Of a DNA stretch of 64,000 bases, positions 31,007 through 37,000 are shown piece after piece. Where the stretch lies: NCBI GenBank assembly GCA_002269645.1, contig NIVC01003295.1, forward strand, positions 42,027-106,026, given 5' to 3'. The position numbers and the translations under genes are program-made. Below the pieces are notes generated by a model, which made no database searches, was not told where the DNA came from, and worked only from the letters and a program-made list of their open reading frames with translations. Source of the stretch: Macrostomum lignano. Taxonomy: Eukaryota. Numbering within the stretch: position 1 is the stretch's first letter; each line of letters starts with the position of its first letter.

Positions 31007-34000
31007 ATGGCTGCTACAGCAGGAAATGGCAGCATGGACTCTGTGACTACGCCAGCCAGTAAGTATGACTACTGCAGAACTACCGAATGGTACATCTTCC
31101 TGGGCTGCAGTTTCGGAGTCTATGTCTGCATGCTCATACTCATCAGCGTCGGGCGGGTCGTCTGTCGGAGGAGCAAGCATCTCGAGGACAGTTCGGAAAC
31201 TGACCAAGATGAAGACGAATTGAGCGGACAGCCTCACAGGCTGGGTAGTCAGGCTGGCATTGTCACCAGGGTTCACCTGTACAGCATGGCGCTGATGAAG
31301 GGAGCCAACAATCTGGGGAAATTTATGGTAAGTACATGTAGATTTTTTTCTATTTTAAACTTTTTTTGGGATCAAGATATTTTGTGCGAAGATGGGGGGT
31401 GTTACAGGTATGCACTGATGGGAAGATAATAGGGTAGGGAAACACAAAAGAGAGAGTCTTTGAGAGAGGAATAGGGTACAGTGAATGCCGTAAAGAGGAT
31501 AAGATGGAGAGGGTGGGATAGATAAGATGTATAGAGAGGATGGGATAGAGAGAATGGGATAGAGAGGATGGGATAGAGAGAATGGCATAGAGAGAATGGC
31601 ATAGAGACGATGGGATAGAGACGATGGGATAGAGACGATGGGATAGAGACGATGGGATAGAGACGATGGGATAAAGACGATAGGATAGAGACGATGGGAT
31701 AGAGATGATGGGATAGAGACGATGGGATAGAGACGATGGGATAGAGACGATGGGATAGCGCTATCGATGGGATAGAGACGATGGGATAAAGACGATAGGA
31801 TAGAGACGATGGGATAGAGACGATGGGATAGCGCTATCAAAACATTTTTGCAACCATTAAATTTTTGCGTTTAACAAAAAACTTGCGGCCAAGTTTTTTC
31901 CAAGGCGGTGACAAAAAAGCAGAAGAGTAGATAAATTGAAGTTGGCCTTTTACAAGATGCGTATGTCATTATTCTAACCTAATTCTAAGACCCATTAGTA
32001 AGGACTCTTTAACGACCAAACTGCATGGCTAAGACCCATTAGTAAGGACTCTTTAACGACCAAACTGCATGCCTGAGACCCATTAGTAAGGACTCTTTAA
32101 CGACCAAACTGCATGCCTAAGACCCATTAGTAAGGACTCTTTAACGACCAAACTGCATGTTTAAGACCCATTAGTAAGGACTCTTTAACGACCAAGCTGC
32201 ATGCCTAAGACCCATTAGTAAGGACTCTTTAACGACCAAACTGCATGCCTAAGACCCATTAGTAAGGACTCTTTAACGACCAAACTGCATGCCTAAGACC
32301 CATTAGTAAGGACTCTTTAACGACCAAACTGCATGCCTAAGACCCATTAGTAAGGACTCTTAATTCACTTTATATCTGCTAATCGATGGTTATGACACCA
32401 TTCTTGTTGATTTTTTCAGCTTCCATCAATTGCGTACTAACCAAAACCAGCGTTGCTTAACTGACCAATAGCAGGAAGACTCGTTAAACACTAACCTATG
32501 CCTAGGACCCCATCATTGCAGTGATTCTTAGGCTTTTATACATCAGCAGCTCTCTATCATTAACAAATTTCAGTTGGTGATTCACTCCCTCTGCGTCATC
32601 GCGTCCTTCGTCATCTACATCCTGATGACCTATCAGTTCACAGACATCCAGACCGGGCCAATGGAAAGTCGCACTTTGTTGGTGTGCCATTCTACAAAGC
32701 ATTTTCCTGTTGTGCACGTGGACTTTGCGATTAACTTGTTCTATCTGGGATTTTTTATCATCAGGGTGAGATGCATTTTCTTTTTGTTTCGACTCGCTTG
32801 TACGTACTGGTGCAAGTTTTAGAATTCCTATGCAAACACTGCGTTTGCTAAGTTATTTTCGCTACATATCGGCACTTGGTACAGATTTATAGAACTCTTA
32901 ATGTGCACAGCCATCGACACGGATCACTGAGTAGCTTTTCTGACTCTCTTGAATCTCTGACTCTGACTCTCGTGATTCTCCAGAATCTGACTCTTGTCTG
33001 GCTGACTAACTCCGCCGCTCCTGACTCTCTGACTCTCCTGACTCTCCTGACTCTCCCGACTCTCCCGACTCTCCTGACTCTCCCGACTCTCCCGTCTCTC
33101 CTGACTCTCCTGACTCTCCTGACTCTCCTGACTCTCCTGACTCTCCTGACTCTCCTGACTCTCCTGACTCACTGACTCTCCTGACTCTCCTGACTCTCCT
33201 GACTCTCCTGACTCACTGACTCTCCTGACTCTCCCGACTCTCCTGACTCTCCTGACTCTCCCGACTCTCCTGACTCTCCTGACTCTCCTGACTCTCCTGA
33301 CTCACTGACTCTCCTGACTCTCCCGACTCTCCTGACTCTCCCGACTCTCCTGACTCTCCCGACTCTCCTGACTCTCCCGACTCTCCTGACTCTCCTGACT
33401 CTCTGACCACTGGCTCTCCCGAATCTTGTGACTCTCTGACTCTGACTCTCCTGACTCTCTGACTCTCCCTGACTGTGACTCTCCCGACGCTCTGACTCTC
33501 CCTGACTGTGACTCTCCCGACTCTCTGACTCTCCCTGACTGTGACTCTCCCGACTCTCTGACTCTCACTGACTGTGACTCTCTAACTCGGATTCTATGAG
33601 TAACGACTGCTTGGTTTATCGCTAATAAATATTCGAAAGAAAATTATCAAAAAAACTTCAATTCCAGCTTCTGTCAAGCAATTCACTGCAAGCATTCTGG
33701 CTGACCTTGGACACCATGGCTGACCACCTCACCCTGATCCCGTCCGTCATCATGTATGCCCTCAACAAGCACATGATTGGTAAGCAGCCCGGGCTATCAC
33801 TGCAGAACTGGAGTTTTTCCATAGTTGCTAAATGAATTGGGTCACAAACCAGCTTCGATTGAATAAGCCACCTTCATTCACGCCACTGCATTGCAGTGTT
33901 CCAGTTCGCCAGAATCAATGGTCTGAAGTATTTGGTGAACTCCATGATCTATTGCAACATCCTGCGCACTGAAAAGTACATCAGACTGGTGTCCCTGCTG

Positions 34001-37000
34001 ATTAGAATCATCTCCATCTGGGCCATCAGTGCGGGCCTCTACCAGCTGGTGAGTGTCCTCCCCGCACTCTCCCCTGCACTCTCCTCCTGCACTCTCCCCC
34101 TGCACTCTGCTCCCTGCACTCTCCCCCTGCACTCTCCTCCTGCACTCTCCCCCTGCACTCTCCCCCTGCACTCTCCCCCTGCACTCTCCTCCTGCACTCT
34201 CCCCTGCACTCTCCCCCTGCACTCTCCCCCTGCACTCTCCTCCTGCACTCTCCCCCTGCACTCTCCCCCTGCACTCTCCCCCTGCACTCTCCCCCTGCAC
34301 TCTCCCCTGCACTCTCTCCCCTGCACTCTCCCCTGCACTCTCCCCCTGCACTCTCCCCCCTGAACTCTCCCCCTGCACTCTCTCCCCTGCACTCTCCCCT
34401 GCACTCTTCCCCCTGCACTCTCCCCTGCACTCTCCCCTGCACTCTCCTTTCTGTACTCTCCTTTCTGTACTCTCCTCCCTGCATCCTCCCTGTATCCTCC
34501 CTGCATCCTCCCTGTATCCTCCCTGCATTCTCCTTCCCTGCACTCTCCTTCCCTGCATTCTCCTTCCCTGCATTCTCCTTCCCTGCATTCTCCTTCCCTG
34601 CATTCTCCTCCCTGCATTCTCTTTCCCTACACTCTCCTCCCTGCACTCTCCTTCCCTGCATTCTCCACCCTTTAATCTCTTTCTTCCATTCGCCATGCCA
34701 CAATCGCCCAACACCAACCAGATTGAGAACGTGGGCGATTTCTGGCGCAAAGACGGCCTGACCAACGCTGTGTTTCACCAATACCACGATTGCTTCTACT
34801 ATATGCTGATCACAATGAGCACAGTTGGCTACGGCGATATTTCGCCTCACTCCGTGATTGGAAAATTTTACATCATCATTTTTATTGTTGTGGCGTTGGT
34901 AAGTTAACAGGCATGGACACTTGTCTTGTGTAAGGGTAACAACATGACCAGTATAAACATCATATCATTGTAGGGCCTGTTCACCAGCATCATTCCCGAG
35001 GTGTCCGACATTTTGACCGAGAAGAAAAAGTACAGAAGAAATCGAGTACACTTGAAGTCAGGAAAAAAGTAAGCTGAGAAAGAAAAGGACCCCCAGTGAT
35101 CTTTGATTGAGCCCACATGTTGACTTCAAATTTCAGACACGTGGTCGTGGTTGGAAAGTTCACCTGCCAAATGATGAAGACATTTTTCGACGATTTTTTT
35201 CATTCCGAGAGAGCCTCCAACGCGCGCGAATACGTTGCTATGCTGGGACTGTAAGTGCGAGAAATTTTCAGGAATTTTAAAGAATTTATTGCTCGTAGAT
35301 ATTTTTGACACAATCAGCCTCAATGCACCCCTTGCGATTAACTAATCAAATTATTCAAGGCCATTCAAAATGGAAATTTCTTTAGCAGATACGTCTAGCT
35401 TAAGGTCACTCAGAGTGGAAATTTCTCTAGCAGATACGTCTAGCTCAAGGTCACTCAGAGTGGAAATTTCTCTAGCAGATGCGTCTAGCTCAAGGTCACT
35501 CAGAGTGGAAATTTCTCTAGCAGATACGTCTAGCTCAAGGTCACTCAGAGTGGAAATTTCTCTAGCAGATACGTCTAGCTCAAGGTCACTCAGAGTGGAA
35601 ATTTCTCTAGCAGATACGTCTAGCTCAAGGTCACTTAGAGTGGAAATTTCTCTAGCAGATACGTCTAGCTCAAGGTCACTCAGAGTGGAAATTTCTCTAG
35701 CAGATACGTCTAGCTCAAGGTCACTTAGAGTGGAAATTTCTCTAGCAGATACGTCTAGCTCAAGGTCACTTAGAGTGGAAATTTCTCTAGCAGATACGTC
35801 TAGCTCAAGGTCATTGGGATGAGGGACAACATCGCCGAAGGAGTTGCGCTAGGGTGCCCGCGGCCCCTGAAATTATAATTATTTATCATATTAGTACACT
35901 ATTTTTAAACTATATCATGGGGCGCCAATTTTCTAGTTGAGAGGTCGCCGAAAGTTACATTATCTCCGCATAAAGTACATCATTTTCCATCCAATAAAAC
36001 TTTAGCGACGAGCCGGACCTGGAGCTGAAAGCGCTGATCAAGACCCGGGAGCTGTACGTGACCTACCTGCAGGGGAGCGTCATGTGCGTGAAAGACCTGC
36101 AGCGAGCCTGCTTGAAACAAGCCTCGGCCGTTGTTGTCATCTCCGATCAGCAGACTCGAAACGAAGAGGACGAAGATATGAAAAATATCATGCGGGTGAT
36201 TGCGGTCAAGGATTTTTGTCCGGATGTCCAGGTGCTGGTGCAGCTACAGCTATATAGGAGCAAAACCTACCTGAGGAATATTCCTGACTGGAGGCCAATG
36301 CATGGGGACCAGGTGAGATTTTGCTGAAGAGAATAAAACCTATGAGAGATAACGTCACACGCTAGATTGAGATATGAGATCACCTGACTGACTAAAATTG
36401 CGTCACCTACAAGTGAGCTTTGACCTTTAGGATGACGTCACCAGCTAGTATAGACTGAGATGACGTCACCACATCATCAGCTAGTATAGACTGAAGTGCA
36501 GTCACTAGCTAGTATAAACTGAGATGACGTCACCAGCTAGTGTAAGACTGGACCATAGATAATTAATTAGTGCTTTTAGTATTTGTGGACTGGACTAAGA
36601 CAACCTGGTTTACGAACCTTCGGTGAACTGACATCACGTTAAACTGAAATGAAGTCACATATAAAATCAAGATGACGTCATATTTAAGACGGAGATGATT
36701 CTTCATTACCTTAATTATTATCTTTGTAACCGAAAAAGTGTAAATAAACTTTTCAGGCTATCTGCATTAACGAGCTTAAATACGGGATTCTAGCTCAGAG
36801 CTGCCTTGTTCCCGGCCTGTCAACTCTGCTCTGCAACTTGCTCATGCTGCGCTCCTGCAAAAGCAACCAGTTCCCACAGTTCTCTTGGCAGGAAGCTTAC
36901 TTGCACGGAGTTGAGTACGAATTCTACAAGGTAAGTGACCAAGTTCATGCAGTTCTAATTCTCTCGACCAGTTATTTTTGTCAAGGTCAATCACGTGTAG

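Follow-up and report, generated by a model that had tools for sequence, protein, structure and literature searches.

A stretch of 64,000 nucleotides from the free-living flatworm Macrostomum lignano (Macrostomorpha; contig NIVC01003295.1, positions 42,027 to 106,026; hereafter the window) harbours a gene that, judged by its sequence, encodes a divergent paralog of the alpha subunit of Slo1-type (BK, slowpoke) K+ channels with full Slo1 architecture. In the fourth transmembrane segment (S4) of its product, glutamine and glycine stand in place of arginines R207 and R213 of human Slo1 and asparagine stands in place of the acidic E219; R210 is kept. The explanation that we favour, with moderate confidence, is an intact and constrained divergent Slo1 paralog whose voltage sensor is remodelled and which is gated mainly by Ca2+.

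The gene model was obtained by following reading frames and AG/GT sites and was then corrected against the closest database protein, BOX15_Mlig020881g2 (P0001). This M. lignano protein, named "BK channel" in UniRef, came out first when 5.8 billion protein clusters (90% identity) were searched. The resulting frame of 1029 codons is open, canonical AG/GT ends bound each of the 16 introns, and 5 of 1029 residues distinguish the translation from P0001 (99.5% identity). The protein itself is already public, deposited as an uncharacterised "BK channel". The interval 33897-34048 on the plus strand is exactly one exon, exon 4, with AG before it and GTGAGT after it; its first codon is completed by the G at 33779 that ends exon 3, and it encodes S4, the S4-S5 linker and the first part of S5. 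The remaining exons are listed in Table 1. Neither an alternative S4 exon nor a second Slo gene was found in the window outside the 17 exons when canonical and paralog proteins were used as tblastn queries (E < 0.5).

A second copy of the gene is present on contig NIVC01000163.1 (L001), the genomic locus of P0001. Both of its flanks are syntenic with the window at 97-99% identity, which is why we regard the window and this locus either as alleles or as products of a very recent duplication. The coding sequences of the two copies are separated by 24 synonymous and 5 non-synonymous changes (synonymous divergence, dS, 0.036; non-synonymous divergence, dN, 0.0021; dN/dS 0.059). In exon 4 two synonymous bases differ and nothing else, and the S4 protein sequence is identical; identity in the repeat-rich introns is mostly 88-98%. 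By these comparisons the gene is intact and under purifying selection. The voltage-sensor domain is the most diverged part of the protein, with 27% identity to canonical Slo1 as against 36-39% in the pore, RCK1 and RCK2, and the surrounding DNA is very rich in repeats, with a minisatellite in nearly every intron. Both features would suit a decaying pseudogene, or an artefact of annotation or assembly, with an odd S4 resulting from relaxed constraint. Such an origin is nevertheless strongly disfavoured by the open frame, the splice sites and the low dN/dS, as well as by retention of the S4 pattern in old paralogs that are merely 51-56% identical, and we consider it extremely improbable.

The protein carries the Pfam domains Ion_trans, Ion_trans_2, Slo-like_RCK (twice), BK_channel_a and Slowpoke_C, the gating-ring accessions being PF22614 (twice), PF03493 and PF21014. 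When all PDB sequences were searched with phmmer, the best matches were Slo1 of Aplysia, Drosophila and human (E = 1e-155 to 1e-140, 470-520 bits); the Slo3 gating ring reached 297 bits and Slo2 (KCNT1) 109 bits (1e-31). An AlphaFold2 (AF2) model, built from P0001 and 49 homologs with a mean predicted local distance difference test score (pLDDT) of 69.6, displays a predicted S0 helix at residues 28-56, S1 at 102-131, the segments S1-S6 and two Rossmann-type domains. The predicted S0 is matched by a hydrophobic stretch at residues 27-52. When the model was compared with PDB using Foldseek, all top 50 matches were Slo1, with TM-scores of 0.87-0.89 to crystal structures of the BK gating ring. Domain order and fold are thus common to the window protein and canonical Slo1 (human KCNMA1, Drosophila slowpoke, Aplysia Slo1; PDB 5TJ6/6V22/7PXE), at an overall identity of about 30-38%.

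Slo2 channels have an S4 depleted of gating arginines, possess neither S0 nor a Ca bowl and are gated by Na+ and Cl-. Since the window protein shares with Slo2 (KCNT1/Slack, KCNT2/Slick) an arginine-poor S4 and tandem RCK domains, membership in the Na+/Cl- activated Slo2 subfamily, or in the pH-gated Slo3 subfamily, has to be weighed against the Slo1 type. Slo2 identity was rejected on the bit scores (109 versus 520) and on the presence of the predicted S0 helix and of an intact acidic Ca bowl; unlike Slo2, moreover, the window protein keeps one S4 arginine. Slo3 (KCNU1) resembles the window protein in being a Slo1-derived paralog with altered gating. Slo3-like clusters, however, keep three S4 arginines, often have GFGD in the filter, lack an acidic Ca bowl and group with vertebrate Slo1-like sequences. 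Slo3 identity was rejected because the filter of the window protein reads GYGD, its Ca bowl is acidic and its clade stands apart from the Slo3-like clusters (P0129, P0144, P0154) in the tree described below. Membership in either subfamily is hardly credible. The wording "functionally between Slo1 and Slo2", used in the original prediction, is best kept as an analogy only, as the protein is of the Slo1 type by sequence and fold (520 versus 109 bits).

Substituted residues in S4 and at the ion-binding sites

The register of S4 decides which arginines are missing. Using phmmer against solved Slo1 structures, S3-S4-S5 of the window protein aligned with Aplysia Slo1 without any gap and with maximal posterior confidence. 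The same register was obtained with MAFFT, both with 120 close homologs and with 155 diverse representatives, and it is identical to that of the manual alignment on which the original prediction was based (R207 to Q, R210 kept, R213 to G). Residues are given in human numbering according to a human Slo1 reference, in which the landmarks D99, D153, R167, R207, R210, R213, E219, D367, E374, E399, E535, D895, D897 and others fall at their published positions. An arginine at position 213, which would have overturned the prediction, did not emerge under proper alignment, the aligned residue being G217. R214, equivalent to R210, is the sole S4 arginine, and its column is invariant in a 50-sequence alignment. 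To bring R214 to position 213, a shift of three residues would be required, and neither of the flanking anchors, LN[KR] and NIL[KR]T, would survive it.

The 120 best matches include 116 canonical Slo1 sequences, derived from molluscs, arthropods, tardigrades, annelids, lancelets and others. Every one of the 116 has arginine at 207, 210 and 213 together with aspartate or glutamate at 219, and among the 120 best matches the M. lignano group alone deviates from this arrangement. The combination of Q, R, G and N at these four positions (Q/R/G/N) is therefore a clade-specific feature and not alignment noise. W203 and E180, which vary little or not at all in canonical Slo1, are changed as well, to M and T respectively. 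The S2 and S3 charges D153, R167 and D186 are kept. Among the M. lignano paralogs, the voltage-sensor domain is about 50% identical.

The pore and the Ca bowl are retained, as had been predicted. The selectivity filter TVGYGD occupies residues 293-298, and the conductance-related D292, F315 and E321 are kept, as is P320; E324 is changed to D, and G311, (nearly) invariant in canonical Slo1, to A. The Ca bowl reads DQDDDDE and preserves D892-D897, including D895 and D897. In its neighbourhood Q889 is replaced by A, and N449, contributed by the neighbouring subunit, by D. In the RCK1 Ca2+ site (D367, E535, R514 backbone, M513), E535 and R514 are kept, and D367 is changed to E and M513 to L, both positions being invariant in the 116 canonical sequences. 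The Mg2+ site retains N172 and E374 and has lost D99 (to L), a position with little or no variation in canonical Slo1, and E399 (to T); the E399 position itself varies across invertebrate Slo1.

Taken together, the window protein shares F315, E321, D153, R167, D186, R210, E535, D895 and D897 with canonical Slo1 and differs from it by R207Q, R213G, E219N, E180T, D99L, E399T, D367E, N449D, M513L and Q889A. The earlier reading of this locus missed the compensating changes R207Q and E219N, the loss at the Mg2+ site (D99L, E399T) and the charge retained at R210.

Paralogs and recurrent loss of R213

We wondered how far the S4 pattern extends beyond the window. The window protein belongs to the gene group Mlig020881 (P0001). 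Two further M. lignano paralog groups, Mlig020874 (P0002; S4 AFQYARLVGLRFIVN) and Mlig015491 (P0003, P0004; S4 VFQFARLGGLKFLVN), also have Q/R/G/N, so the paralog check that had been suggested along with the prediction gave a positive answer. Mutual identity of the three sets is 51-56%. The same genome encodes a canonical Slo1, Mlig033072 (P0030), with S4 GLRSTRALRIL and R/R/R/D at the four positions, and the window gene is thus a paralog, as had been claimed. Counting also Mlig033054 (R-R-H; P0131/P0277) and Mlig020928 (N-R-R; P0185), M. lignano, a flatworm used in the laboratory, has no fewer than six Slo1-like gene groups, unusually many for a single animal. Within the Q/R/G clade, P0003 (Mlig015491; P0003/P0004) has G in place of D367 of RCK1 and a Ca bowl reading DQDDEMEVE, with D897 changed to M. 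The window protein is not degenerate in this way, and Ca2+ sensing may differ within the Macrostomum clade.

No ortholog was found outside Macrostomum in two large protein searches. When 1.84 billion cluster representatives were scanned with HMMER, the M. lignano paralogs scored above 1000 bits and generic Slo1 at most 537 bits (at most 37% identity), with nothing in between; the same gap, with generic Slo1 below 540 bits, was seen among the 5.8 billion clusters mentioned above. A neighbour-joining (NJ) tree was constructed from 74 near-full-length proteins (833 columns, 100 bootstraps). The Q/R/G clade is monophyletic in 100 of 100 bootstraps and is placed outside both canonical Slo1 and the Slo3-like groups. 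Deep nodes of the tree are poorly supported: the sister of the clade is Tubulanus P0121 in 35% of bootstraps and Calicophoron P0153 with Mlig020928 (P0185) in about 50%. The alignment and phylogeny proposed earlier thus place the window protein as a Slo1-type paralog in a clade outside canonical Slo1, best described as a lineage-specific divergent Slo1-type subfamily.

Further, we examined conservation of the three S4 arginines in 61 Slo-family cluster representatives that could be aligned across S4 without indels. Arginine is kept at 207 in 53 of them, at 210 in 57 and at 213 in 26. R213, long seen as the main gating charge of BK, is therefore the least conserved of the three, and its loss is recurrent. 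Divergent Slo-family clusters (P0121-P0269) have W, Y, N, H, I, C, G and others at this position. Examples are found in the nemertean Tubulanus (XP_074641051, R-R-G), the annelid Owenia (CAH1784201 and CAH1783284, R-R-I and R-R-L), the starfish Acanthaster (XP_022111761, R-R-I), the tardigrade Paramacrobiotus (XP_055343003, R-R-Y), M. lignano itself (Mlig033054, R-R-H) and one unnamed clade (R-R-W).

Loss of R213 is thus less exceptional than the original prediction implied, since divergent Slo1-like paralogs from other phyla commonly lack this residue. These R213-less paralogs resemble the window protein in Slo1 architecture and in keeping R210, at identities of at most 37%. Unlike the Macrostomum clade, they keep R207 and usually an acidic residue at 219. 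What appears to mark the Macrostomum clade is therefore the joint loss of R207, R213 and the acidic residue at 219. Our search of the literature on flatworm or Macrostomum Slo paralogs and on natural R213-less Slo1 channels returned nothing specific.

Proposed gating

In BK channels, Ma et al. identified R213 as the sole voltage-sensing residue of S4 and found the activated sensor to be 3-7 kcal/mol more stable once R207 or R210 was neutralised; a charge of about 0.3 e is associated with the opening of the pore itself (PMC2151507). According to a later gating-current study (PMC9231616), both R210 and R213 are BK gating charges and only their neutralisation alters zQ. In that study, R213Q moves V0 to +394 mV, and neutralisations of R207, E219, E180 and D186 shift V0 negative with zQ unchanged. 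The assertion of the original prediction that R213 is the main S4 gating charge therefore holds as far as voltage sensing by this residue is concerned (PMC2151507), but its primacy is called into question by the later work, which names R210 as well (PMC9231616), and R210 is kept here. By cryo-electron microscopy of Aplysia Slo1, sensors of R196Q and R199Q are activated, whereas those of R202Q are resting and the pore is fully closed (PMC12218146). The ligands of Mg2+ are D99, N172, E374 and E399 (PMC4319557), and mutations of R213 virtually abolish Mg2+ activation while zJ is reduced by only 0.3 e (PMC2174156).

Based on these data, we propose that the gene product would form a tetrameric K+ channel opened mainly through Ca2+ binding at the gating ring, because its Ca bowl is intact and the D-to-E change in the RCK1 site is conservative. 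Each voltage sensor would carry about half of the already small BK gating charge, since of R210 and R213, the two arginines that carry it in BK, the equivalent of R210 alone is left; a single-arginine S4 suggests weaker voltage control. Potentiation by Mg2+ would be lost, as the protein has only two of the four Mg2+ ligands and lacks R213, the electrostatic target. The set-point between the resting and the active state would be given by opposing substitutions, R207Q, E219N and E180T favouring the active state and R213G the resting one. Because R207Q and E219N oppose the loss of R213, the net set-point of the sensor is not predictable. A "Ca-gated, weakly voltage-dependent" channel, as originally envisaged, is a plausible hypothesis.

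Close counterparts are the engineered BK mutants R207Q, R210Q and R213Q of human and R196Q, R199Q and R202Q of Aplysia (PDB 9DI8/9DIC, 9DIT, 9DKF/9DKN), as the window protein naturally has the equivalents of R207Q and R213G, along with E219N. In the engineered channels, however, single changes were introduced into a canonical background and lead to opposite locked states, whereas in the window protein they are combined, evolutionarily fixed and accompanied by dozens of further substitutions.

Several points weigh against the proposed mechanism. The electrophysiology is an extrapolation from mutations made one at a time in BK of mammals and Aplysia, a different background (27% identity in the voltage sensor). 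Ca2+ sensitivity may differ too, since D367E, N449D, M513L and Q889A change neighbours of the Ca sites that are invariant in canonical Slo1. Exons 11 and 12 come from public annotation of the sister copy alone, and the frame is also kept when both are skipped together. Finally, the basic K219, two positions past G217, could carry charge or replace R213 in its function.

The last point can be extended to a sensor that is re-wired and not weakened, in which R214 and K219 (and K205 or R229 nearby) would provide a BK-like charge and gating by Ca2+ and voltage would be normal. K or R occupies the K219 position (human I215) in all three paralog groups and is found there in only 2 of the 61 other Slo-family clusters, most of which have a hydrophobic residue. 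The counter-charges D153, R167 and D186 are all kept, and the voltage-sensor domain is constrained among the paralogs, both in line with this reading. K219, however, is five residues away from R214; by alpha-helix geometry it would point about 140 degrees off the R207-R210-R213 spiral and is thus no obvious replacement for R213. The dependence of zQ on R210 and R213 alone in BK, reported in the gating-current study (PMC9231616), is likewise at variance with such a role. We hold re-wiring to be unlikely, although it deserves serious attention.

Conversely, the sensor might be locked in one conformation and serve as a scaffold only. The channel would then be a purely Ca2+-gated large-conductance K+ channel, or a modulatory subunit co-assembling with canonical Slo1. 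Single mutants of the R207Q type lock the BK sensor in the active state and those of the R213Q type in the resting state, D99L and E399T change the interface through which voltage sensor and gating ring are coupled, and partners would be at hand, as M. lignano has canonical Slo1 and no fewer than five further Slo1-like gene groups. Yet an inert scaffold would have no need of R214 and its partners D190 and D157, all of which are conserved. Full voltage independence is unlikely given the charge of about 0.3 e carried by BK pore opening (PMC2151507), and heteromerisation with canonical Slo1 is pure conjecture. On balance, a locked sensor seems quite improbable.

We thus retain the remodelled, mainly Ca2+-gated Slo1 paralog as the preferred explanation. 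Beyond it, the Macrostomum Q/R/G clade may be one tip of a broad invertebrate class of Slo1-type channels, in which position 213 is not arginine and R210 is almost always kept. Members of this class would essentially be Ca2+-gated large-conductance K+ channels devoid of Mg2+ modulation, or would sense voltage via other residues. This wider proposal is advanced tentatively and with considerable doubt.

Repeats and neighbouring genes

Positions of exons, substituted codons and tandem arrays are summarised in Table 1.

Table 1. Slo1-like gene and tandem arrays in the window (residues in human numbering where marked)
Feature	Position	Strand	Remarks
Slo1-like coding span	31007..43693	+	17 exons, 3090 nt with stop, 1029 aa
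Exon 1, aa 1-107	31007..31327	+	Start codon, S0 helix (31085-31162), S0-S1 loop; D99 equivalent is L
Exon 2, aa 108-171	32574..32765	+	S1, S2; D157 (human D153, 32721-32723) and R171 (human R167, 32763-32765) kept
Exon 3, aa 172-209	33668..33779	+	S2-S3 loop, S3; D190 (human D186, 33722-33724) kept; human E180 to T
Exon 4, aa 209-259	33897..34048	+	S4, S4-S5 linker, start of S5
Codon Q211 (CAG)	33902-33904	+	Human R207; phmmer, MAFFT
Codon R214 (AGA)	33911-33913	+	Human R210; phmmer, MAFFT
Codon G217 (GGT)	33920-33922	+	Human R213; phmmer, MAFFT
Codon K219 (AAG)	33926-33928	+	Human I215; MAFFT
Codon N223 (AAC)	33938-33940	+	Human E219; MAFFT
Exon 5, aa 260-318	34722..34898	+	Turret, pore helix, filter TVGYGD (34821-34838), most of S6
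Exon 6, aa 319-350	34974..35068	+	S6 end (F315, P320, E321 equivalents kept), C-linker
Exon 7, aa 350-388	35137..35250	+	RCK1 start; human D367 to E, human E374 kept
Exon 8, aa 388-490	36006..36312	+	RCK1; human E399 to T, human N449 to D
Exon 9, aa 491-548	36757..36930	+	RCK1; human M513 to L; human R514, E535 kept
Exon 10, aa 549-617	37318..37523	+	RCK1 end
Exon 11, 35 nt	38155..38189	+	RCK1-RCK2 linker; placed by public annotation of sister copy
Exon 12, 76 nt	40026..40101	+	RCK1-RCK2 linker; placed by public annotation of sister copy
Exon 13, aa 654-769	41249..41594	+	RCK2 start
Exon 14, aa 770-881	41803..42138	+	RCK2 with Ca bowl DQDDDDE (42037-42057)
Exon 15, aa 882-962	42445..42687	+	RCK2
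Exon 16, aa 963-1018	42801..42968	+	RCK2 C-terminal lobe
Exon 17	43658..43693	+	Last 11 residues, stop
Intron minisatellite arrays	31503-31831, 31985-32361, 33018-33573, 34060-34671, 35355-35813, 39298-39948, 40606-41182, 42189-42368, 42991-43508
Minisatellite array downstream of Slo gene	44512-45101
Upstream tandem arrays	8257-9283, 9510-9952, 10356-10887, 12403-15092, 15485-18115, 18653-20061, 23688-24198, 28757-29469

In the Slo gene, most longer introns contain a minisatellite array, different in each, with units of 9 to 76 bp and up to 64 copies. A 13-bp array, CCCTGCACTCTCC, begins 12 bp past exon 4. At 14.6 kb, the L001 copy of the gene is longer than the window copy (12.7 kb), a difference that probably results from repeat copy numbers. 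The 20 kb upstream of the gene consist mostly of large tandem arrays, with spurious long open reading frames (ORFs) in all frames; examples are a 21-bp unit repeated 120 times (2.7 kb), an 18-bp unit repeated 145 times (2.6 kb), a 31-bp unit repeated 44 times, and the microsatellites AAGG (133 copies) and ATAG (178 copies). An apparent retrotransposon remnant is located at about 24300-28700 (plus strand), where ORF fragments resembling reverse transcriptase precede an RNase H domain at 27352-27861 (Pfam E = 3e-11). This retrotransposon-like insertion is common to L001, at 98.7% identity.

Exons at 6188-8199 (plus strand) belong to a gene of the DNase I-like, or endonuclease-exonuclease-phosphatase, family; the Pfam match to Exo_endo_phos is weak (E = 6e-4, below the curated cut-off), and the motif FGSFNIQIFG...ILVVMEIRD resembles DNase I. 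Toward the end of the window, an HKD active-site motif is encoded by an exon of a phospholipase D-type gene at 62617-63300 (plus strand; Pfam PLDc, E = 5e-8). Downstream of the Slo gene in L001, at 26901-29091, a minus-strand gene with a DNA-binding domain of the interferon regulatory factor (IRF) type is found, and then a gene with a GCV_T domain. The IRF region is collinear at 98-99% identity with about 45900-48400 (minus strand) of the window, where it was placed by synteny. An open frame rich in Q, P and H runs off the left edge of the window (1-660, plus strand), and GC-rich DNA with long ORFs on both strands extends over 3318-4706; neither has a Pfam match.

Significance for BK channels

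BK channels are the textbook case of dual gating by voltage and Ca2+, and for two decades there has been debate over the S4 residues responsible for their gating charge. In the window, one natural and selectively maintained channel gene joins the equivalents of three classic laboratory mutations (R207Q, neutralisation of R213 and neutralisation of E219) with loss of half of the Mg2+ site. For a specialist in BK channels it is a useful natural experiment and no surprise, because Slo2 dispenses with S4 charges and loss of R213 is frequent among divergent paralogs; practical value is modest before recordings. Should the wider invertebrate class of R213-less channels be confirmed, comparison of single-arginine BK channels would show which parts of the voltage sensor serve coupling and which serve charge movement. 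Together with its paralogs and with the R213-less paralogs of other phyla, the window protein provides ready constructs for asking to what extent a BK-type channel can do without voltage sensing, whether R210 is sufficient, and how the set-point of the sensor is re-balanced.

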